Positions 47,549 through 63,794 of a stretch of DNA of 64,000 nucleotides are shown piece by piece (the stretch's first letter is position 1; each line of letters starts with the position of its first letter). A program made the translations under genes and the position numbers. The notes beneath the pieces are model-generated. The model had not been told where the DNA came from and did no database searches. It saw only the letters and a program-made list of their open reading frames with translations. Location of the stretch: NCBI GenBank assembly GCA_965235115.1, contig OZ249448.1, positions 20,460,001-20,524,000 on the forward strand. The letters are read 5' to 3'. The DNA comes from Laetmonice hystrix (lineage: Eukaryota).

Positions 47549-49943
47549 TCAGGTCAGTTGGACTTCTGTCTCGTCGATATTTTTCAGACTGAGGACTTCC
47601 AACACTCCTTTCCCTTTGGTGTCTGCCCTGATCAGTTCGTCTATCTCACGGAAACATCCTGGGTCAATCAGAATCACCTGTAAGTATACAACCACAGATT
47701 TACGGTCAGCAAGTACTCAGGTGGGAAAGTAACAGATCCTGACTGTACCAATAAATACCATTAAAGTAGCCTACATGTCAGTCTCATCCAGCCCTGATCA
47801 GGAGGGCTGAAATAAGTTTAAAGATAGAAATATACCTTCTCAAACTCATACCGTTTCAAGGTCTGCCCCAAATTCCTCTGCCTCAATCTTGGAAGCAAGC
47901 CTGTGGATCTTTTCCTTCATTTTCCCTGCAAATTTGCCTGTAAATATAATAAGAACCAGACATGATTTCACCTTCAAGAAAATAACTCTGAACTTTAAAA
48001 AAATTGAAGCATGAATTCATCACTTTGGATTTGGTTACATCGCACTATGAATTTTATTTGCCAAGGGGCAAATTACTACCACTGTATAAATATTCTATGT
48101 ACTGTTAGTATACTGGCATGGCATTAACAATTTATCCACCTGGGACAGTCAACTTGAGTCTCATCTGTGCCCTCTGTATGTCAATGACTGAAGAGGCCTT
48201 CAGCTGCCGGATAACTTCCAATGCCTGGTTTAACACAATTAAAAGAAATTTGTTAGAATTTCAAGAGATTCTTTTGCGGTTCAAATCAATCACAACTCCT
48301 GTCTTGTGTTTTGCAAATAAAATATCTTGATTTTAATGTAGATCCAGAGGTCAACATTTTTTTTCAGCAAATCCCCATGATTTGTGACTTATTAAAATTT
48401 TATTTTTGATATGATTCATACAAAATATTTGTGGGATAAAACCAATTAGGAACCTCTGTCAAGAATCTAAAGACGCCACTGCTTGACTGCCAAATCAATT
48501 CAAATTTATTCTAAATCTCATTCAGACTGATTTCAATGCTGAAAATAGTTTCTCCAGTGACCATTTCCCACAAACAAATTTCCCCCATTTCCCTGTGATG
48601 AGAGGTTGGATTTAATACTGACCTGCTGTTTGGTGTTCTGAGTTGATTTCACAGAATAATGTATGTCCTTCATCGCCTGTTCAATCAGTGTCACCGTGTA
48701 TGGTCGATTACTCTCTGGGTTCACACACATGTTGTTCACAATTGTGGCAATGTCTCGGAACATTGTCTCCAGTTCAGCATGTCTTTCCTTACCAGAAACT
48801 TGCAGCTCTCCTTTAGCCAAAATCTTCAAATGACATAGAAATTGAAAGAAAATGATTATATGTACAATCCCAAGAAACCTTTGAGTCCTTGAACATTTTA
48901 AGGTCTTTGCACTACCAGAGCTTCAATCATAAATAAGATTCCTTTCATATATGTTTTTACGAACTGGACCCAGGACTTCATGTGGGTTATACCTCAGTTT
49001 AGTGAACACCACCAAAAAGAGATTTTTTTCAACATTTTTGGGTAGCACTTTTCACTGCGGACTACCGTGGATGACCATGCTCCACCGTGGACTAAGGACC
49101 ACAGACCACCGCAGATCACCAGATTTTGGGTTAGTTAGGGAACAGATTAGTTATATTGGTCAAGCGGCAGGTGGTGGGCAGGCGTCCCCCAGGACACAGT
49201 TGAAAGCAGCAATCTAGTCGGATGGATGTTGCCACTCTTCTGTCTTCACCTGTTAGGGTTAGTAAGGTCTACCGTCTTTACTTGTCCACGGTGATCCACA
49301 TTAGTCTGCAGTGGTCCACGGTAGGTGAAAAGTGGTACACTTATTTTTTAACTCAGTGCAATACAACCAGGAGCCTTACCCACCTGCAGGCAGATTTCAT
49401 CTTGATTGTCAGTATTGAATGCTTTCTTCAGCTCGTCACTCTTTGCCACTTGCCCTTTGGAAACATTCATGAACACAGTATGTGTCTGCAACACTTCATC
49501 TATGTCCGTCTCTCTGAAATGAAAAAAAGAAATGCATAATATATTCACTTCATTTTCAAAAAGAAATTCTACATGATATTGAAAACACTCGATTGAGATT
49601 TTCTAGGGTAATTTTCTCCTTTTTTTGGGGGGGGGGGGGGGAGGACAAATAAATGTCATCTCACCATTCAGTCGCTCGTCATGCCATATAAATCTATTAA
49701 TATATAATTGATTGTATCACGACACACGTTGACAAGAATACTGGGAAAATATTTACCTTCTGGCTATGCTTACATTTGAACGGTAATTTATTCTAGTTAA
49801 ATTTATACTCACAACTTTCTCCTCCAACATGAAACTTTGTTGGGATAGCAAGCGATTTCGAACCTTTTCCCACCCTTCTTCAACCTGACAACTGCCACAT
49901 TTGTTAACCGTTTCTGGTTTGTTGGTGTGAATATCGCAGCCAT
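47549..49943 (-). CDS. SBDS: Ribosome maturation protein SBDS, 6 coding exons, 253 aa
   Basis: Exons 49943-49813 ([37 protein letters not shown]), 49513-49384, 48823-48623, 48224-48140, 47937-47852, 47677-47549 ([30 protein letters not shown]). The total is 762 nt and open. Confidence 0.97.
49046..49334. mobile_element. Decayed inverted-repeat element in SBDS intron 2
   Basis: CACTTTTCAC..CCGTGGA at the left end and TCCACGG..GTGAAAAGTG at the right end. Confidence 0.45.
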
Positions 49944-50699
49944 TTTTGTTACGTCTTAGACTGGGGCAGAAACCCAAAAAGTTTATGATAAAAGAGTTAG
50001 GCTAGTCTGTGACCGGGCCCGCTTGGCACTGACACGGTCAGAGTAAACTGCACGGCCACGGCTGGGATGGCACTGGCACAGAATCGACGACAGACCCGCT
50101 GAGAAGCGTGGTTTGGACTGGAGCTGTCAAAATTAATCAAAGTCGGTGAATTCCAGCGTGTCGATAATTCCTGAACTGACCAACAATAACTTTAGTTCAA
50201 TGGGTGAATAAAGTGAGAAACACACGTCTTTCGTTTCACCGACGCAACTGCAAAACTTATTTCACCACTTTGCAGCAACTTGCATGACAGAAAGGTGAAT
50301 CAGTCATGGCGGAAATAACCACACTAATGACGCCCTCTGGTGACAAGCTGATAAAGTTTTTAACATAGTCCCCTGGTGGAAAATTTATGTACTATTAGTT
50401 ATGGTTTCTCGCTACTAAACACATTGAAAAAAAATAAGAGCGATCGTTTTTCAGTTTCACCCCAGCACAACTAAAAATATTAATAAGTGACTGAATAGGA
50501 TTAATTTAATATAGCGTTATTTCAAGTTGAAATAATAACATTTGGCAACTAAAACAAGAAACGGCAGTGATACAGGTAAATATATTTTCACAATTAAATC
50601 AAGTTTCCTACCTGCTACCTGAATGTGCTGATGAAGAGTTTCCGAGACTAAGTAAGAAGGTACACCACATTGAACAAAGACAACATAAAATCTTTAAAA
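49944..50699. promoter_or_regulatory. Head-to-head (bidirectional) promoter region between SBDS and the zinc-finger gene
   Basis: Divergent start codons are 756 bp apart, with CpG-containing segments between them. Confidence 0.6.
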
Positions 50700-53442
50700 A
50701 TGGCTATGGACCCTGGCGGTGGTGCTTACAACGACCGAAAACGTCGTAATTTTGTTCATCTGAACACCCAGACATTTGAAAGATGGCAGAAGGTGAAGAA
50801 CGAGGTCACACAAGAGAAGTCCTTCTACTCGGACTCGGATTTTGCTGGATACTTGCTAGAAAAATACGAGGCAGCGCGGTATGCGAATTTGCGATATTAT
50901 TTGATGAAGCTTTTATACTGTACCAACACAACAATGTACAACAGTGTATGATGGTTAGATAATCACTTTGATTTATAGGTTAAACCTCTTTATGAATAGA
51001 ATGGCGTGGTTAATTATACACGACAGAATAAACACTGTTCCCACTCGCCACTGCCATGACTGCAAGGAATGGTGGAAGTTAAATTATGCAGCGCTGGCTC
51101 CGTGAGCCTCTTTCACTGTAGTCTTTTAGCCTGTGTAGTAGGCCTACTAGTGGGAGGGTGGGAAGATTTGCCAGTCAGTCTCCTCACATTAATGTGCTAC
51201 CCTGTCCCTGTTGTGTTGAGTGTTGACTGTTGTTATAATAGTTTAGCAGTCATAAAGTTAAAAACACCGAATAGGCAATGGAAGAATGGGGGGGGGGGGG
51301 GGGTTAAATTGGCTCAACCACCGAACCAGGGTGTAAATTAAATTAATCACAGATAATCATCAGGCTCCACAGATCATGTCCGGTGACAATAATTCTATAG
51401 CACTTGAAAATGAACGTGAATTTTTATGGCATGCCAGCCCTGCCCTGGCCAAATTAGGAAAATTTATCATTGAGAGATTTTTCTAATCAGTTTGTGCAAT
51501 TTCAACTAACGTGTTATAGTTTAAATCAGTGCATAAAAATTACAGTTGCTGACTTATATTTTGTGAAGATTCTGAAATTGTTAGCATTTCTATGACAAGG
51601 AATAAAAAATTCTATATATATTAAATATAATAGGAGTTTAGTTGTGTGTTTTTGTAAATGATAAGTGAGGGCAGCACAGTCTGTGAACTAAATAATGCCC
51701 TGGTCCCAGTGGTTGGTACCGTAATATTGATAAATCAGATGGCATGGCAGATCTCCTCTCATATTGATACAGCCGTAGATGAGTAGGCTAAATACACGCT
51801 CGCTCTGTAATGGTCAGAATTTTGTTGTTTGAGGTGTTAATTGAATATTGCCTGTGTATTTACCTGTGTTTAAGGGCTGTGTTATTGTAGGATTACTGTA
51901 ATGACTTTATGTCAGGGCTATGTTGTTATAGATGCCTTAATGTATTGAGAGCCTAGTATAGGTTGAACAAAAGCTTAGAGCAGTGTTGTCGTATGTGGTT
52001 TGCTGTATTGCTTGATTATGTTTTTTCCATCTATGTTTCAGGGCTGTGATAGCAGAGAAGGAGATCCAGAAAGATCTACAGGAGGAGGTGACCAGAAACA
52101 CCCGTTTTGCTCGTGGCACTCAGGTGTTGCACATCCCCAGGGATCTGAAACATGAACTTGATTCAATATCCGTACAGTCTGGGCTGCACTCCACTGTGAA
52201 GACTGTCCGCTTCCTCGTGGATGCTTTCCAGTAAGTAAACATAGGTTATGGCATGGCTCCAGTAATATTACATTGAAAATACACAGTGTACCAAAGTAAG
52301 ACTACTTTGTGTTCTATATTTTTTTTAGAATTTGTATTGATTGTAAACCAAGGCCGTGTTCACACTAGGGAAATCTGCTGGCAAATACGTGCTATAGCAG
52401 GAGCGTGCCAGGCGGCAGGAAAGTTCCCCCGGCAAAGTGTGGGTAGTCTGAATGCTGATCTTAATCAGACCTTCTCATTTCTGCCGGCAGAAGCTCTGCC
52501 GGCAGCTAGGTTTGAACGCGGCCCAAGTTGCTGACCTACAGAAATCTGATATATCCTGCTTTTGTTTGTTTTTGCAGTGACAGGATACCTGATGTGAAGC
52601 TGAAGACTGGGAATGGTAAAAAGACTAACACAAGCTCAGTGGTATGGGATGCTTCGCGTGGTAAGCCAGGGACGTCAACAAGCATGGGGGATGACTCAAT
52701 GCAGTCAATCATAAAGAATGTGATGGACGTCCTGGAGGCAGAGGATAAGGGTACGATTCAGACCATCGACTCAATGGATGCACCAACACCAGCAGCTCGC
52801 AGTGAGGGTAAGGCCATGGTGGTTGAAAATGTCACGGTGCAGGTCAACAATGGGACAGTCCAGGAGGATGGCCTGAAAGCCAAGGATGATGCCACACAGC
52901 ATGCCATTGATGTGCGGGTCAAACGTGATGAGAACATGATTGAGATCGGACCAAGTGGAGGAGGGGAGGATATCTGGTCGTCAATGATACTGGAGCAAGT
53001 AATCCTTGGTGGTGACGGCGCTCGCAACACTGATAGTGGTGAACCCTCGTCAAAGAAAAGGAAGGCAGCGTCACAACCACGAGAGAAAGTGTTCCGTTGC
53101 AACACCTGTGCTGAAATTTTGACGAAAGAAGCTGACATTGAGAACCACGTCTATAAGATGCATGGTGCATGGCCGTTCATCTGTCGGTTGTGTCAGCTCT
53201 GTCTGTCGGAGGAAGAGGACATGATTGAACACGTGGACACAGCACACAGCGCCATCTACCTCTGTGGCTTTGCTGGCTGCAATTACAGCGCAGCACGTGA
53301 ATTCTCAATACGGGGGCACTTCATCACCACCCATACCAGGGGAACCAGCCTACCAGTCTCCATTTTGAAGGGCAAACTTTGGGATATGTATGTGAACCGG
53401 AGAACTACATTCTATGGACTCACGCCTGTCAACATTTCGTAG
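50700..53442 (+). CDS. Uncharacterised protein with three C2H2 zinc fingers and two N-terminal RHH-like motifs, 410 aa
   Basis: Exons 50700-50878, 52042-52230 and 52578-53442 (GT-AG, in frame, 1233 nt). Fingers: FRCNTCAEILTKEADIENHVYKMH, FICRLCQLCLSEEEDMIEHVDTAH, YLCGFAGCNYSAAREFSIRGHFITTH. A basic NLS-like KKRK precedes the fingers. Confidence 0.82.
52352..52523. mobile_element. PIF/Harbinger-like MITE in intron 2 of the zinc-finger gene
   Basis: CAA|GGCCGTGTTCACACTAG ... CTAGGTTTGAACGCGGCC|CAA, with a 3-bp target duplication. Confidence 0.7.
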
Positions 53443-55748
53443 CCCTAGCAAGACTTGGCCCAGTCTCAGATGAAGCGACTGTTGGGTTAGTGTATGACGG
53501 ACCACTACAAACATGAAACATCGGAAAGAAAAATGACCCCAACACAGGTTTTTTTTCTGGTCAAGCAAACGCTTGAGTTGAATAACGGTTGAGGTGCTCG
53601 AGAGTTGTATCTAGTGTTGTTGCTTTTAGATGCTGCAACTTTCACAAGGATGAGAAGTTGGTTTACCCCTTACCCCTAGTGATTGCATTCTCATAGATGG
53701 AATCAGATTAGTTTTCAATTTCGCCCCCAGGTAGAGTTCCCATTTGTTATCACAGGTAGCATAAGAGATGACCAAGTGAGTATAGAGAGTAAAGAATAAT
53801 GGAAACAGACCCAGGTAGAGAGAAAATGTAGTGCACAATAGCTGGGAAGCAGGGAAAATCATTTGTAACCTGATTGTTACTAGAAGTGGACAGTTGATAC
53901 TAACTGAAATGAAACTGGTTGCCCTAGTGGCATTGAAGGACAGACCAATGCAAAACTCGTCATAACCTGGCTTGAAAAATAAGGAGGGAAGATTGAAGAC
54001 TGTAGTATGGATTGAGAAATTTTAAGCTTGTCTCCATTAACAAAAATTGAAGACGTGGATCTAAGCCAAAGGGACAGTTAAGTGACAACCATGTCCTCAA
54101 TCTCTATGGGATAGGGAGCAACATTCAATGGAAACAAGACTACACCAGAACTTCTGCATTGTGTACTTGATTAAACGATATGAAGTAGGTTTGTGGCTCT
54201 ACAGTGGATTCACAATATTATTTGGTCATTCTGTGTTAATTTGAATCCCATCACCTTACCAATGTAAGGATATTATGAGTGTTATCCTGTGATAGTCATT
54301 CAAAAAAATGCGTCATTATGTCAGTAGAATTTCATTATTTTCTTTATTACCTGTATGGATTTCGACTTTGATTTAACAATTTGTTTTGTTTTTTTAACTT
54401 TAATTTTTAATTTTAAACTAATGTAGCACATTTTTCAATACATCTTTAACGTCTTAGAACAATCTTATGTGAAAGAAAAGCATGGGTTCGTGGTCTTAGA
54501 GCTTGATGACAATGATCTAGTAAGTCTACTTGAGCAGTGAAGGCTGTGCACGATGCTTCTGGTGTGCTGTTTCTGTCTATTTCACCTCTACGTTAATTCG
54601 TCCTTCGACATATATAGAATTCGTAGAAGGCACATTAGTCGCAGCGGTATTCGACCTGTTAACATGATATTGAATGTTTTCTACAGTATAGAAAGACCGC
54701 TATTTATATACAAGTATATGTATGTATGTATATCGAAATGTAAATCTCTAAATACAGTAACCAATCTTTGAGTATGATTAAAGGATTCTTTTGTAATACA
54801 TGTGTCTGTAACCCCACATAGTGTACTAGTAATCCTTGCATGAAACCACCCTTAGTGTTTTACATGGATTCCAAGATACCCTGATGACCAAATAAAACAT
54901 AAGTACCAAAATATTCTACTGTATGTTGTATTTTCATCTGCATAAGTTCTATCGACAGTACTAAAAGAGTTATCTAGAAATTGTATGGTTTTGTCCACAC
55001 AATTTTTTCTTCTTCCTCTTCAAGGAATGTATCGCAATAGTTTTGTGACCTGATAAAGTGTTGTTTAGAGAGAATGTCGATTTCGCAGTCCTGTGAGGTG
55101 CCCCTATCACTGTCACCATAAATTAGTTTGACCGAGAAAATGTTGAGCGCCCTGAAAAAAAAAAAACTAGGTGCGATAGACCTATCATTATCATGTGGCT
55201 TTTAATTTGGCATCCCTCTTGATCTGCAAGATGAGCCCATATTATAGATATAGTTCCTAGTGTTTGTCAGAAGTGGTGTAAACCTTTCAGGTCAACCCAG
55301 AATGTCCTCGATCTGCTTCCCCTGTACGTCAGTTTTTGGCAGCATTCGCAGGAGAGCTGTCGGCCAACTAGCAGCTGTCGGCGAGGCCCCCAAGCGTCAA
55401 GAAATGACAGTGCAAGCATTGGTGCTGCCATCTGGTGGATAAGTAGGCATCAAAGCTGTGCGGCAGGTTATTTAATTAATAATAATAATTTATGGATCGG
55501 AATTAAATGGGGACAAAAAAATGCCCTGTCATAGCTTAATCGTCAACCACCGTTTAGGCCTAGTTGGCCAACATTTATGTTTTCTGTGATCGACTAGATA
55601 GTAGATTGCTCGGCTCCGTTAAAACGGTTACCAAGAATACCTACCCGGCGTAATTTTACTCTATGGCGGCGGGCTTTCCGTTTTCTTCAACACGTGTGCT
55701 CCTTTGGAAATATCTGAACGAAACTAGAGTTTAACAAAATACAGTATC

Positions 55749-57856
55749 ATGTCTGTGGAACCAGAATCCCAATCTAAAACAAAAAATGGAGAACCAGCAG
55801 CCAAAAAAATGAAAACGTCACCGGGTAGCGACGGGGACGCGGGGAGTGGCGATGGTCGGTTCGTGGGGTTTGAGGTAGACAGAGTGCTGAGTGACAACTC
55901 CCAGAACAAGTTGATGACGGTGGCGGGAAAGTTTGCCGGTAGCGAGGCGGAGGCGGTGGTGATCGTGGAGAAGACACCACTAACAGTGGAGACGGTCAGA
56001 AAGATGTTGACGGCAGACACCCGAACCGAGCTCACCCTGCAAAACGACATCTACGGCACATTTCAGTGCTACCCGCCACCTGCTTCCAACAGTCAGTAGA
56101 TCTACACTAAACTAGTCTACAGTAGTACTGTCACTTCACTAGTCTAGAGTAGAGACTAGTATCAGAGTATAGTCTAGCTAGAGTAATGTCAGTAGTCTTT
56201 ATTAATAGCTCGAATTTTGGAATTTTTACCCGGCCTTCCCCCCCCCCCCTATTTTCCAAACTCTTTTTTTCTATGTTTCATGCTTAAAAATAATGGAATT
56301 TCGTTGAAAGATTTGGGAGAAATTTCTACTCTACATAGTACATGTTCAAAAGACATGTTTTCGACGTTCCTGAAAATTCCCCCCCCCCCCAAAAAAAAAA
56401 AATTCGGGGAGGGCCCCCAAAAATGGGCCACTGATTATCCAACAAAAGTTGGGCCCCCCCTCCCTTTTCTGGAATCCTGGATCTGCCACTGGTACCTGTC
56501 CCATTTACCCATTTTCCAGGCTTAAAAACAACAGTAATATACCCAGCAACAACACGGCACATTCAGAAGTACACAAAACAGGATGTGCATTTGGTGGAAG
56601 AAACCCCAGATGACTACTCCAATATTACACTTCCATTTATTGAAGAAGAGAATTTCAGCATACAGGTGAGAAGTAGTCAAGCAGTTAAAGCACTAAAGGT
56701 GATGACTCCTCGTTCTGTGAGTCTGGGTGCTTACAAATGTAAAAGCAGGGCCGTAATTCAAGGGGGGAGGGGGGCTAGGGGGCTTAAGCCCCCCCAATAT
56801 TTTCAGTGTTGCCTAATAATTATCCTACTTTACCAGGGAGACCCTTGGATCCGTTCATTGAGCCCCCTCAATAATTCAATAGCCCCCTCAATAATTTGAT
56901 GAAAATTACTGGCCTGACAAGTAACATGATAAAGTTGTTGTACAACAGGGGAAGGACATGATCGATTGTCTGCACTGTTAGATTCATTGAACCAAACCAA
57001 TACTTATACCGTTATAGTCTAAAACATGGTCATTTAATAGTCTTCCATGAGCAGTTTAGTTACCCAGGAAATGCTGTCATAATCGTAAAGTACAACTGTA
57101 TATTCATTTTGTATTTTTCTGTGGTGTCACAGTGGGTCTACAACATATTGGAGAAGAAGCAAGAAGCAGACAGGATTGTGTTTGAAGATCCCGACCCAGA
57201 GAATGGTTTCATTATGGTACCGGACATGAAATGGGATGGTCGACAGGTTGACGATTTGTACCTGGTGGCCATTGTTCATCGACACGGAATCCGCTCACTG
57301 AGAGATCTCAACGCCTCCCACCTGCCACTACTTACAGGAATACAGGATAATGGAATTGTGAGATATTGTTAGGTTGCCAAACTAGTTCATGACTGAAGAA
57401 AATCTTCATGTGGGCCATCTCCTTTTATACAGCTCCCCTTCCCCTCCCCCTACATGTTGACCTTGGAATTTTGCTTAAAAACAAGATTTTTTCTTTCATA
57501 TTGTTCATCCTACCAACCTTATCCTATGCCCAAAAATGTCTAGTTGATGAAGTTGTTGGTGTAAAAGTGGAATTTTCCATGTCTTTCAGAAAGCCATCAA
57601 GGACAAGTATAACATCAAGAAGAGTAAACTGCGCATCTACTTCCACTACCAGCCATCGTACTATCACCTACATGTCCACTTTACCCATCTTCACTACGAT
57701 GCACCAGGTAGCGGGGTGCTCAAGGCACACCTACTCTCTGATGTCATTGCAAACATCAAGATGACTCGCGATCACTATCAGAAGGCCAGCCTCACGTTTG
57801 TCATGAAAGAAAACGACAAACTCTGTCAGAAATACAGAGAACTTGGAAAAATCTAA
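55749..57856 (+). CDS. DCPS: m7GpppX diphosphatase (scavenger mRNA decapping enzyme), 4 coding exons, 326 aa
   Basis: Exons 55749-56091 (NDIYGTF), 56520-56665 ([14 protein letters not shown]), 57133-57357 ([21 protein letters not shown]...PDMKWDG...RSLRDL), 57590-57856 ([15 protein letters not shown], the HIT motif). The total is 981 nt and open. Confidence 0.97.
56746..56916. mobile_element. Short MITE in DCPS intron 2
   Basis: CAGGGCCGTAATT ... AATTACTGGCCTG imperfect terminal inverted repeats. Confidence 0.55.
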
Positions 57857-58818: not shown

Positions 58819-61800
58819 ATGCTGGCATCGCGTGGTGGGAGAAAACGGGCGCACACTGCCACTGGCTCGGATGGTGGGGGCCGTGAGGGGGAGGAACGGG
58901 GTTACAAGGAGCGGGGCCCGCCCGACAGCGGCGGCCCTGGACGTGCCACCCGCACGGCTACACGGGCGGCGACGGGCCGAGCGACACGTATCACTACACG
59001 ATCGGCTACACGTAAAGCCATGGGCCGAGCCACACGCCTTACTACACGCTCGGCTTCACAGACAAAGTAAGGACCCAGGGACATGTTCAAAGTACATATC
59101 ACCGAACCGGTGTGTATGACAGGGTTCCCACGGTCATGGAAAATCATATTTGGTTTTCCAGACCTGGAAAAGTCATGGAAAATAGAAAAACGAGGGAAAG
59201 TTATGGAAAAGTAATAGAATTTGAGATTTCTCTTGAACCACATTTTTGTTTTTGTTAGGCCTAAATTGTAAAGTTCCAAAACAAACTACGGGACAATTCG
59301 ATCTAGGATTTTAGTGTATTTGATTAATTTTATCTGGATTGGTCATAAAAGTTTTGGAAAAGTCATGGAATTTCAATATATAGCCAACTTGTGGTACAGC
59401 TAGCTGTATGCAGCAACAAAGTATGATTAGCAAGACCATGTACCAGGCCCATCTAGGGGCAAACTTTTTATAAAAAGAGCAAAAACTTTTTTTTGGGGTC
59501 AGTTTCCTCCCCCTTTCAATCTGCAAGTACAGAACCAGTGTCAGGTCCTAATAAAATCCTTCAAAAAATCTTTAAAAATAACTTAAGTTTGTCTTCTACA
59601 TGTATTTTTTAGTGCAGAGTCAGCTCGTTTGAGACAGGGGTCAGTGTGGAAGAAATGGGGGCCATATCTGTCTGAGCGACAGTGGGGCACGGTCAGAGAG
59701 GACCACTCCGAGGACAACAACTGGTATGGTTTACATGATGTGTACACAATAAGAGAATCTAACTAAGGGGGTATAAACTGGGGATTCGCAGGGTGTACAT
59801 GTTGAGCGCAGACTGGGTGGGGGCTCTGCTAGAGTAGACACTGATGGGGGGGGGGGGGGGCATCAGATTTGGAAAACTGGATGGTCTGAAGTCAGAGTTT
59901 GTGAAAGTTGTGTTACTACTGCCCCTTCCTGAGTGGCTGGTATGCTTGTGGTTTAGCTGGGAATATTTCCCACATGAAGATGCCGTGTCCAGGGCCTACA
60001 AGTGGGGAGAGGATGGACTGTTTGGTGTTGGCGATGATGGTGTCAATGTGTGTCTCAGTCTGGCTCTGTGGAATGGGAAGGATCCAATCCTGAAGGAACG
60101 ACTGTTCGGTCTGACGGGACCTCAGGTAGGCCTGCATATATAGTCACGGTGATCAGTATCTACTGAGGAAATGTAACTTTTCAGTAGCAGCGGATAATGT
60201 AAACCTCAAATTTACAAATTTCAGTACAGAAAATCTGTAGGATTTTTTACTGTGCTGCTGAACAAGACTTGTCATTATACAGAAAACAATATATTTACTT
60301 CTAGTTATAATGTTCAGTGACAGTTTGGTACGGTGACTATGGCTCTACCATTACAGGGTAACCATGGTGAGGACGTCAAGGAACTTTACTACTACCTCGA
60401 TTCCACTCCCACTCACTCCTACATGCGTGGTTTATACAAATACCCACAGGCAGAGTTCCCCTACAGTGAGCTGGTCAAGGTGAACTCCAGACGCACAAAC
60501 ACTGAACCTGAGTATGAACTTCTGGATACAGGTAGCTAAACCTGAGTGTGAACTCCTAGGTACAAGTGGTCAAACTGCAGCATGAACTCTATAGATACAG
60601 GTGGGCAAACCCATGCCTCAAAGAGTTTCATGTTAGAATGAAAACATTGAGTTTATTACACTTGAAATGAATATTTAATTTACCGGTGATGACTTGTCTG
60701 AAATAAGAACATTGTGTTTTGGCACATAAAGCACTGTATTTTAACTAAGGTGATGGGACTTCATTTTGTTCATCAAATAAAATATTACAATACTGAAGTT
60801 TGCAATCTAGGGTAACTTTTAGGAGCACCTCTATGGGATTGTAACTAATTGCAGGTGTGTTTGCTAGTGATGCTTACTGGGATGTGGAGGTGGAGTATGC
60901 CAAGGCCTTCCCTGGGTCCCTGCTCTGTCGGTATACAGTTCACAACCGTGGCACAGAGGGCGCCACCATCACTGTCCTGCCACAGCTGTGGTACAGGTAG
61001 GAAGGGGGTTAAGGGGCTACTTGTCCTTTCTATGTTATTGACTTTTGGTGTGTGCTTTAGTTTGTGCTTCATTCTATAAGTGACCCAAGAAGTATCGATA
61101 AAGATTGAAATTTTTGAACATTATTTTTTACCATAGAGTGCTTTAGTAATAAGTGTATTCCCTGGATAACTGCAGGCCATATTTAGGAGGCTGACTTGTT
61201 CAGGCCTCCAACAGTGTAGAGTGTCCTGTTTCAGGAACACGTGGTCGTGGGCACAGGACAGCGAGGCCGAGATCCCGATATTTGTCCAGGAGTCGGATAC
61301 GACAGTGTCGGGAAAACACCCAGAGATTGGTACAGCAAACCTTGATATAAAACCATGTAGTAATAGAGTAGGCGTAATTAAAGATGTTTAGTATAAAAAG
61401 AGACAGAGCAGTGTTTTCTGATCGTTTCCGTCTGTAAATGTCTGTAGTTTACGGTAATTGAGAAAGGCTGATATTTGGTTTGCTGGATCTAAACCAGGAT
61501 CTACTGCTAACAGGGAGATGGCAAGAGGTGAAATCTGGGATCATAAAGGTTCAGAGTTAAACTGAAGTCCCATTGTGCTGCTCACATTGACACAGGGAGG
61601 TTGGAAGTGGAGTTTGGGAAGACAAGTCATGGACAGTTACCCAAATTGCTCTTCACTAACAACAACACCAACAGTGGAAGGCTTCAAGGCAAGGTGCCAT
61701 CTCGACACGCCAAGGATGCCTTCCATCGCTATATTGTTCATGGTTGGTGGGGATTCCCTGCATTCTCTCGAGTTGACTGTTGTTCTCTGTTACATAGTTT

Positions 61801-63794
61801 GGCACCACCAGTAAGCCCACACTGACTCGTGACTGAACAATGTACAAGATATTGTACACATGTAAATCCTAAGGTGGATAAATTTGAGTGTACTCCATAC
61901 TGATTTTATTTTAGAATCGGGCCTCCTCTGAGGAAGGACTTTTTGAGAGATATCTCTAGGTATAACTGGTGCATCTGTGTGATGTTCTACTCCAGGTGAG
62001 ATAGACCACGTCATATGTGGCACTGCACCAACTGGGACAAAGGTGGGGGCGTTGTACACCCTCACGGTGCCGGCAGGGCAGTTGGCCACGGTGGAGTGCA
62101 TCCTGTCAGAGAAGTGGTGCAGTAGTAAGATTAAAAACATCCTGGCTTTTGGACAAGCTTTTGATGATGTCATAAAACAACGCAGAGAAGAGGCAGATGA
62201 ATTCTACAAAAAGGTCAGTTAGTCAAGTGATCCTGACATATAGTCTTTAAACAAAATTCGTTAGAAAGAAAGGGTATAATTTTTTAAATTTGTGTAAATC
62301 ATTGACAACGTCGGGACCCGTAGTTATAATGATGCTGTATTGTACAGATTCTGCCAGCCCAGCTGACCGATGATGAGAGACTGGTGGCACGCCAGGCCTA
62401 TGCTGGGCTCCTCTGGAGCAAACAGTTCTACTTCTATGGTGTCGAGGATTGGTCAAAAGGTAGTAACTAGGCCCCAGAAACATTTCTCCCCATTTGGCTT
62501 TGTGAGAAATTGTGACTTGTGACTTTGTTAATTTGGCTCAACAGTATGAAGTGCATATATAGGAAATCTATCTTGATATGGGTTGCTGATTTTGACTCTC
62601 ATAATTCTCAGCTCAATGGTTTGAAAAGTCCATGAATTCTAAGCTCCAGAGAGGAAATCAGAGACAAAGCTAAACATGCAGTGGCGCCACCTGGTGAACA
62701 AAGACATCATCTCCATGCCCGATAAATGGGAATTTCCCTGGGTACTGTATCCTCTTATTTTCTTGTCTGAAAAGTATAGACATGGAGGATCATTTAGATT
62801 TCGAATTTTTAAAAAGAGAATAGAGAATAGTAGTGATGAATTTGAAGAAATCTTCATGATTTGAATATGCTGTTAATGTGGACTGATTGTCAAAGGTATG
62901 TACCAGTTCATGTAATATGAGAACTGTTGTGAAGGGAGAACAAAGACATACCACTAGTTAGCTATTGGTGGTGTACAGTCTGAGCCCTGTCCCCTCCTTC
63001 CCCTCTCACAGCATGCTCAGTCTCTCAGTTTGGTAATGTTGGTGGCAGTACGCAACCTGGGACCTCGCCTTCCACATGGTGCCATTTGCTGCCATTGACC
63101 TGGAGTTCACCAAGAACCAGCTCCTGCTGCTGCTGTCCGACAGGTACATGCACCCAAACGGACAGGTAGGGCATGCGGTCAAGCAGACAAATGATTGATT
63201 TATGTTCCAATGTCAGACTGAAAACTCGTGCCAAATGTTTGTCTGGACTATGAGCTATAGTACAGTGATGTTGTAGAGTTTTAGAGGGTAGATTACTCAG
63301 CAATCTAAGGAAGTAAGCTGGGTAGTTGGGGACTGAACTATGAATCGGGACCTTTCTGGTTACTTTTTCTATTGTTTCCATGTCACAGGCATGATGTAGC
63401 GATGCAGCTGTAAACGTTTATCAGCACAGGGCCCGGTTTCTCGAAAATACTTAAGTCTGAGTTTCACTCAACTTTACTCAACTCAGGAAATGGAGGATTT
63501 ACATTGGCTAAAAACGTTCTTTTGAGTAGATTTGAGTGAAACTTAGACTTAAGTATACTTAAGTATGTTCGAGAAATCGGGCCCAGAAGGTACGATTTGA
63601 ATACTTTCACTTTAACCCAGGTATGACATTTCTATTCAACAGCTTCCAGCATACGAGTTCAACTTCAGTGATGTAAACCCACCAGTCCATGCTTGGGCCT
63701 GCCTGCATGTGTACCGTGTGGGCAAGACACAAGGAATTGATGACACAACCTTTCTGAAAAAAGTCTTTCATCGGCTCCTACTCAACTTCAACTG
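58819..63794 (+). CDS. YMR196W-like / MGH1-like glycoside hydrolase (GH63-related), 5' part, continues beyond window
   Basis: Exons 58819-59066 (putative first), 59613-59723 ([19 protein letters not shown]), 59957-60125 ([10 protein letters not shown]...[20 protein letters not shown]), 60357-60531 ([23 protein letters not shown]), 60855-60996, 61235-61329 (RNTWSW), 61596-61742 (KDAFHRYIV), 61996-62213, 62348-62459 ([14 protein letters not shown]), 62650-62741 ([13 protein letters not shown]), 63049-63165 (WDLAFH...YMHPNGQ), 63643-63794 ([19 protein letters not shown]...HRLLLNFNW). These motifs are characteristic of the bacterial/fungal YMR196W family. Confidence 0.88.
59120..59403. mobile_element. 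DNA-transposon-derived repeat in intron 1 of the glycoside hydrolase gene
   Basis: Starts CAGGGTTCCCACGGTCATGG with repeated GGAAAAGTCATGGAA subunits. The right end is decayed. Confidence 0.55.
63430..63583. mobile_element. PIF/Harbinger-like MITE
   Basis: CAG|GGCCCGGTTTCTCGAAAATACTTAAGTCTGAGTTTCACTCAA ... TTGAGTGAAACTTAGACTTAAGTAT..TTCGAGAAATCGGGCC|CAG, with about 40-bp inverted arms and a 3-bp target duplication. Confidence 0.75.

Follow-up and report, generated by a model that had tools for sequence, protein, structure and literature searches.

A single-copy, spliced gene of Laetmonice hystrix encodes a ribbon-helix-helix-like domain and three C2H2 zinc fingers

On the plus strand at positions 50700-53442 of a 64,000-nucleotide stretch of Laetmonice hystrix (GenBank assembly GCA_965235115.1, contig OZ249448.1, positions 20,460,001 to 20,524,000; hereafter the window, whose numbering we use throughout) lies a gene of three exons that encodes a protein of 410 residues. 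Its third exon encodes three C2H2 zinc fingers, and its second encodes a domain whose resemblance to ribbon-helix-helix (RHH) domains is well beyond chance at the level of sequence profiles. RHH domains are textbook repressor and antitoxin modules of prokaryotes and phages; this locus is a working, lineage-restricted, spliced, and conserved invertebrate gene. A first-pass annotation, made by a model from the letters alone, had read exons 1 and 2 as two RHH units fused to zinc fingers, an interpretation that, taken as a whole, our analysis partly supports. The features of the locus are as follows.

50644..50699, + strand: 5' untranslated region (UTR; minimum extent), from the start of the X4 contig; an in-frame stop lies upstream of the ATG
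50700-53442, + strand: RHH and zinc-finger gene, three exons, 410 residues
50700..50878, + strand: coding part of exon 1, residues 1-59 plus two bases of codon 60; ATG at 50700, donor GT at 50879-80, joint present in X4
50748..50876, + strand: unit 1 (residues 17-59), a candidate diverged RHH or helical hairpin, conserved in the orthologue
50879..52041, + strand: intron 1, GT..AG, phase 2, with a poly-G tract near 51285-51305
52042..52230, + strand: exon 2, residues 60-123; acceptor AG at 52040-41, donor GT at 52231-32, both joints present in X4
52042..52111, + strand: linker between the units, ~25 residues, poorly conserved, modelled as a low-confidence helix
52112..52228, + strand: RHH-type domain, residues 84-122 (invariant A-R-G-T-Q arm, strand, helix A, short turn, helix B)
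52231..52577, + strand: intron 2, GT..AG, phase 2, with a high-copy repeat at ~52344-52530
52578..53442, + strand: exon 3, residues 123-410; stop TAG at 53440-53442
53053..53064, + strand: KKRK, a possible nuclear localisation signal by its sequence; the orthologue also has a basic patch N-terminal to its fingers
53098..53163, + strand: C2H2 finger 1, C-x2-C-x12-H-x4-H, with invariant C174, C177, H190, and H195 of the exon 3 peptide
53182..53247, + strand: C2H2 finger 2, C-x2-C-x12-H-x4-H, with invariant C202, C205, H218, and H223 of the exon 3 peptide
53263..53334, + strand: C2H2 finger 3, C-x4-C-x12-H-x4-H, with invariant C229, C234, H247, and H252 of the exon 3 peptide
53368..53421, + strand: conserved C-terminal tail (KGKLWDMYVNRR..FYGL), shared with P0001 and P0002
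53443..54200, + strand: 3' UTR; the X4 contig extends ~330 nt more, to roughly 54530

The ATG of exon 1 has a good context, and because both introns split a codon after its second base, the spliced frame runs through all three exons. Read contigs confirmed the three-exon model and its splicing. Contigs of four runs (X1-X4), all from the same sample as the genome, were placed on 50200-54200. Run X4, which has no record as RNA, gave one contig of 2378 nt (2047 nt of it placed by position 54200) that joins 50644-50877, 52041-52230, and 52578-54200 and beyond, and its GT..AG joints coincide exactly with the borders predicted; in runs X1-X3 the introns are covered as well as the exons. Each exon peptide occurs once in the 627-Mb genome. 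The gene is thus single copy, and the joined X4 form represents a spliced transcript and not a retrocopy. The first-pass annotation was therefore right that this is an intron-bearing animal gene, and the peptides that it quoted lie where it placed them, in exons 1 and 2.

The poly-G tract of intron 1 (~20 bases, 51285-51305) coincides with a 10-base length difference and with raised depth in two runs, and is likely a length-polymorphic or error-prone homopolymer. Over an element at 52344-52611 in intron 2, read-contig depth reaches 1000-1700, against ~40 in the flanks, and its edges interrupt many contigs, which identifies it as a high-copy repeat. By eye, its ends (~52354 and ~52526) resemble imperfect terminal inverted repeats like those of a miniature inverted-repeat transposable element, although a repeat search did not report them.

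The gene's family is rare in databases, amounting to three assemblies and one distant fragment. When 1.84 billion representatives were searched by phmmer with exon 3, the only specific matches were two bare open reading frames (ORFs) from ENA assemblies: P0001, with 73-75% identity, and P0002, with 45% identity over the fingers. P0138 is more distantly related and has three fingers; the remaining matches were multi-finger proteins. Scanning metagenomes with the finger region yielded the 1.5-kb contig of P0138 and nothing else, and a homologous-protein search with the exon 2 peptide returned zero candidates. The contig that encodes P0002 (L003) carries homologues of exons 1, 2, and 3 in collinear order with identical intron phases; its donors (AG|GT and CA|GT) are phase 2, as here. 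Identity is about 32-33% for exon 1 (tblastn E 5e-4), 52% for exon 2 (E 5e-9; L003:7883-8062), and 51% for the fingers; we refer to this gene as the orthologue.

Both N-terminal exons are under purifying selection. Between L003 and a second haplotig of the same locus (L004), exons 1 and 2 show seven synonymous and no nonsynonymous differences, while intron 1 diverges by 2.2%. In the L. hystrix runs the sole exonic variant is synonymous, none falls in exons 1-2, and intron 1 carries more than 12 single-nucleotide polymorphisms and several indels.

The case for an RHH domain in exon 2 is carried by profile-profile comparison. Our query profile (A1) contained two sequences only, the gene and its orthologue. 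For the reference, a homologue search seeded with NikR returned near-identical NikR fragments only, and we instead drew on 61 proteobacterial genomes for 28 RHH_1 domains, each scoring above the Pfam cut-off. Aligned with hhalign, the two profiles matched with a probability of 86.6% (P 4.5e-6) over 35 columns without a gap, from the strand through the whole of helix B. The score, 27.55, lies 9.7 standard deviations above the mean of 150 column shuffles (mean 8.65, standard deviation 1.94, maximum 16.9). A second run with a rebuilt alignment (A4) reproduced the result (probability 85.1%, P 6.2e-6, 27-28 RHH_1 domains; 33-35 columns across runs). Exon 2 also scored 24.6 against a NikR-only profile, a value matched by none of 300 shuffles, and gave z 5.6 against RHH_5 and z 5.9 against RHH_3, all in the same register. 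By Smith-Waterman alignment to Escherichia coli NikR, exon 2 of both orthologues reached z ~4. Pairwise comparisons with DinJ and MetJ, and the DUF3950 profile, gave background-level scores.

Structure prediction and other comparisons point the same way. On A1, AlphaFold modelled the exon 2 peptide as an unpaired extended segment (20-32), a helix (33-46), a two-residue turn, and a second helix (49-61), preceded by the low-confidence linker helix; the predicted local distance difference test (pLDDT) was 62 overall and 71-76 in the helices. An extended segment with an unpaired strand followed by helix-turn-helix is how the model of an RHH monomer lacking its partner should look. Among the 15 rows that a Foldseek search of the PDB listed for this model, 8 were RHH proteins (CdbA, NikR, ORF56, and VapB), none of them significant; in AFDB, CopG, Arc, or RHH proteins accounted for 14 of the 15 informatively named rows, aligned to residues 21-61, and BFVD returned CopG, NikA, DUF1778, and antitoxin rows. 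Since the exon 1 model is of similar size and drew no RHH rows, peptide length alone cannot explain this enrichment. The nearest named clusters to exon 2 in protein language-model space were HicB, RHH_1, RHH_5, RHH_3, RHH_7, and NikA-like (scores 0.87-0.90), which we treat as a lead only.

Several results weigh against an RHH domain in exon 2, and together they frame a different explanation: that the likeness is convergent or spurious, that the N terminus is a lineage-specific helical protein-interaction module, and that DNA binding, if any, comes from the fingers alone. No RHH model of Pfam, NCBIfam, or PHROGs matched either exon at E values up to 10, nor did any RHH family of Pfam match the orthologue's N-terminal exons at that threshold, and a search of the whole genome with PF01402 gave no match. 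The Foldseek E values are all at least 0.8, with root mean square deviations of 6-9 Å, and E is at least 3 for NikR, CdbA, ORF56, and VapB. Superpositions on solved RHH structures are poor (template modelling score ~0.3, root mean square deviation 5-10 Å), though a monomer model cannot show an intertwined dimer. In a VIA-align search with exon 2, the single row at Z of at least 2 was not an RHH protein, and the AlphaFold models of exons 1 and 2 alike, as well as the query profile, were built on two sequences. The exon 2 profile found only out-of-frame junk in 301 proteobacterial genomes, and the residues that would contact bases are not conserved (see below). What speaks for a true relationship is that a match 9.7 standard deviations above column shuffles spans the whole domain without a gap and recurred in a second run, that three RHH families and NikR align in one register, that the helical exon 1 profile, an internal control, scores at background, and that Foldseek names and language-model neighbours independently agree on RHH. 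We therefore regard a spurious likeness as improbable, consider it likely that residues 84-122 adopt the RHH fold, and think the domain probably homologous to RHH_1 domains. Because it fails the curated hidden Markov model (HMM) test, we class it with the RHH superfamily, as a domain in a new setting, and not as a member of PF01402.

Other candidate identities for the N-terminal exons fared poorly. The orthologue's exon 2 matched zf-NOSIP (E 0.004; 17.6 bits, where the cut-off is 30) across the region of the arm and the strand (GTQ...D...LSLQ), but without the cysteines of that finger, and the match is thus probably due to chance. Matches to phrog_3455 (N-terminal exons) and DUF7648 (orthologue, E 0.04) were weak and unrelated, and PDB sequence and profile searches with these exons gave chance matches only. 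Nor did Pfam support BESS, MADF, or a transposase fragment, the alternatives named in the first-pass annotation; each exon, moreover, occurs once in 627 Mb. A marginal second match of the exon 2 profile on the same chromosome (L179) is junk. The profile found no match in viral contigs or prokaryotic genomes, and the one match of a phage tblastn search was attributed to chance; across these sets and the 301 proteobacterial genomes, a close prokaryotic or viral relative, which would indicate recent transfer, did not turn up. VIA-align wide and Atlas shape searches were uninformative because the linker helix dominates the exon 2 model.

The first-pass reading of exon 2 as an RHH-type unit is supported. 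The G-x-S turn, a feature noted in that reading, is present in L. hystrix and absent from the orthologue. As to a beta-alpha-alpha layout, the low-confidence model of exon 2 shows an unpaired extended segment and two helices, and that of exon 1 shows helices only.

Whether exon 1 encodes a second, diverged RHH unit is a closer question, to which we give about an even chance or slightly less. The size of the exon fits such a unit, and so does its layout: a proposed strand (NFVHLN here, DFILLQ in the orthologue, hydrophobic-alternating in both), a helix, a loop of 7-10 residues, and a conserved Y-x-D-S-[DE]-F-A that starts the last helix and, by eye, resembles the R-S-E start of RHH helix B. All language-model neighbours of exon 1 belong to the RHH clan (DUF3950, RHH_1, MetJ, RHH_5, RHH_3, and RHH_6), as do those of the orthologue's exon 1. 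With hhalign, the comparison with RHH_5 was marginal (P 0.02, z 2.5), in the expected register with a 5-residue loop insertion, and RHH_3 gave P 0.06.

The other evidence on exon 1 tells against a second unit, and that part of the first-pass annotation is so far not supported. AlphaFold predicts helices at 6-39 and 45-58 and no strand (pLDDT 76), with the proposed strand inside the long helix. Foldseek and Atlas searches with this model returned zero RHH rows; hhalign against RHH_1 was at background (z 1.0, probability 0.3-0.4%), and across RHH profiles the probability was 0.3-2.4%. Exons 1 and 2 show no similarity to each other. These results fit a protein in which only exon 2 is RHH and forms its ribbon as a homodimer, while exon 1 is a helical hairpin of unrelated origin that serves elsewhere, for instance in binding a partner or in regulation; among known RHH proteins, nearly all are homodimers (bioRxiv 10.1101/2024.12.19.629322). 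Against such a protein stand the RHH-like length and layout of exon 1, its D-S-[DE]-F-A helix start, the RHH-clan neighbours of both orthologues, and a proline of the orthologue at the would-be junction of strand and helix, exactly where the AlphaFold helix is continuous. We consider an RHH domain confined to exon 2 a serious but minority possibility.

Exon 3 contributes the fingers, and here the proposed fusion is well founded: there are three, and all 12 ligands are invariant in four sequences. The fingers are separated by linkers of 3-4 residues and have H-x4-H spacing. Thousands of multi-finger proteins match this region; the best Pfam matches are ZNF451-type double fingers, below their curated cut-offs (PF23108, 26.9 bits at finger 2 against 29; PF23107, 18.2 against 30). 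Exon 3 also encodes a conserved acidic motif (DDSMQSIIKNV...), and ~100 residues in the middle of the protein are absent from the L003 orthologue. Elsewhere in the genome, the finger profile detects clusters of small ORFs with ZNF451-like double fingers (contig C1, ~29.25-29.75 Mb and 51.72-51.74 Mb; C8, ~24.5-26.7 Mb), apparently tandem arrays of finger genes that have no relation to the N-terminal domain.

Does the RHH-type domain read DNA? The strand positions that would face DNA, which align with base-contacting residues of NikR, are not the same in the two orthologues (V/T and H/P); such a change is unexpected in a conserved DNA reader and counts against that function. This variation, including the orthologue's proline, suits a genuine RHH domain that serves only for dimerisation or partner binding, or that reads RNA or another ligand, with the fingers also binding protein; ZNF451-type fingers, with linkers of 3-4 residues instead of TGEKP, are unlike classical DNA-reading arrays. 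The A-R-G-T-Q arm that precedes the strand, however, is invariant between the orthologues and suits contact with nucleic acid, and to our knowledge the RHH domains with known function are DNA binders, an established point (Schreiter and Drennan 2007, as cited in the Plant-TFClass preprint). We rate a role other than DNA binding as unlikely, if a little less so than a spurious RHH likeness. Given the variation at base-contact positions, DNA reading through a ribbon is a plausible prediction, though not an assured one.

The gene has a conserved neighbour. SBDS lies head-to-head upstream, on the opposite strand, in the window, on L003, and on the P0001 contig, that is, in three assemblies. In the window its exons occupy 48533-49977 on the minus strand, so that the transcript start at 50644 lies ~700 bp from the first coding exon of SBDS; at the L003 locus, ~420 bp separate SBDS from the ATG. 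Conservation of this divergent pair in three assemblies suggests a shared bidirectional promoter. The RHH-finger gene evolves much faster than SBDS. Downstream in the window, we recognised by eye in the ORF list DcpS-like exons (scavenger decapping enzyme) at 55749-57372 on the plus strand and, at ~59844-62222, exons resembling a glycoside hydrolase of the mannosyl-oligosaccharide glucosidase type.

Our preferred model takes the protein, from N to C terminus, as a conserved unit of ~45 residues (exon 1), a linker of ~25 residues, the RHH_1-like domain that exon 2 alone encodes, an acidic, variable middle part that includes the basic KKRK, three C2H2 fingers in close succession, and the conserved tail. 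For an RHH domain to function, two strands must pair as an antiparallel ribbon that enters the major groove of DNA. The exon 2 strand must therefore find a partner, which would be either the exon 1 unit of the same chain, as a single-chain pseudo-dimer like that of TraY, or the same domain of a second molecule, as a homodimer. The ~25-residue linker is long enough for the two units to pair, and a complex prediction for exons 1 and 2 (ESMFold2; ipSAE 0.25, below the 0.34 mark) returned no verdict and is not evidence either way. We lean slightly toward pairing within the chain, place pairing between chains not far behind, and consider the lack of any ribbon the least likely of the three.

The paired ribbon would enter the major groove, and ribbon and fingers would read neighbouring sites. 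The most likely role that we predict for the protein, from its domains, is accordingly that of a sequence-specific DNA-binding regulator, and it is probably nuclear. As an account of the whole, a regulator that binds DNA through an RHH head and three fingers is the best explanation that we can offer, with a chance somewhat better than even. A bolder version appears doubtful to us: that this is the first animal transcription factor with an RHH DNA-reading head, a TraY-like pseudo-dimer built from two exons and joined to three C2H2 fingers, whose domain either was taken up by a spiralian ancestor from a bacterial or phage RHH gene and later divided by introns, or was reinvented.

If the preferred model is true, an expressed and conserved animal gene that combines an RHH_1-like domain with C2H2 fingers would give animals a further class of DNA-binding protein. 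Such a gene would also be a naturally occurring hybrid in which recognition by ribbon and by fingers is combined, and a clean case for studying how a eukaryotic multidomain protein domesticates a dimer-dependent bacterial fold. Because the N terminus is invisible to curated HMMs, ordinary annotation pipelines would label the gene only as a weak zinc-finger protein.

Our literature search found no paper on an animal RHH transcription factor or an animal RHH-zinc-finger protein; the only eukaryotic class of RHH-like transcription factors that it found described is plant TCP. The TCP domain (PCF6) has an RHH-like dimeric ribbon (Plant-TFClass preprint 10.1101/2022.11.22.517060). It is plant specific and lacks C2H2 fingers, and we liken it to the exon 2 domain by description. 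The fingers of the L. hystrix protein share H-x4-H spacing and very short linkers with the ZNF451 type, to which fingers 1-3 find their best Pfam matches. They differ in scoring below the curated cut-offs and in numbering only three, and the Pfam search found no likeness to ZNF451 beyond the fingers.

The closest parallel to the N-terminal half as a whole is TraY of the F plasmid, a solved single-chain RHH pseudo-dimer in which the monomer carries the entire fold of an RHH dimer (bioRxiv 10.1101/2024.12.19.629322). Like TraY, the protein described here has two RHH-sized units in one polypeptide, joined by a linker of a length that allows pairing. Its first unit, however, is not demonstrably RHH, and its two units are unrelated in sequence, while TraY is an accessory protein of the relaxosome without zinc fingers. 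The nearest relatives of the exon 2 domain are the RHH_1 domains (CopG/Arc/NikR-type, PF01402) of bacteria, archaea, and phage, with which it aligns without gaps over the strand, helix A, turn, and helix B at 85-87% probability. It has the same hydrophobic pattern and a P/D at the junction of strand and helix, and the L-D-x-[IL]-S of its helix A recalls NikR. It differs in that the Pfam HMM does not reach it, and in its setting: RHH_1 proteins are stand-alone repressors or antitoxins of ~50 residues, whereas this domain is encoded by one exon of a spliced animal gene and lies within a finger protein of 410 residues.

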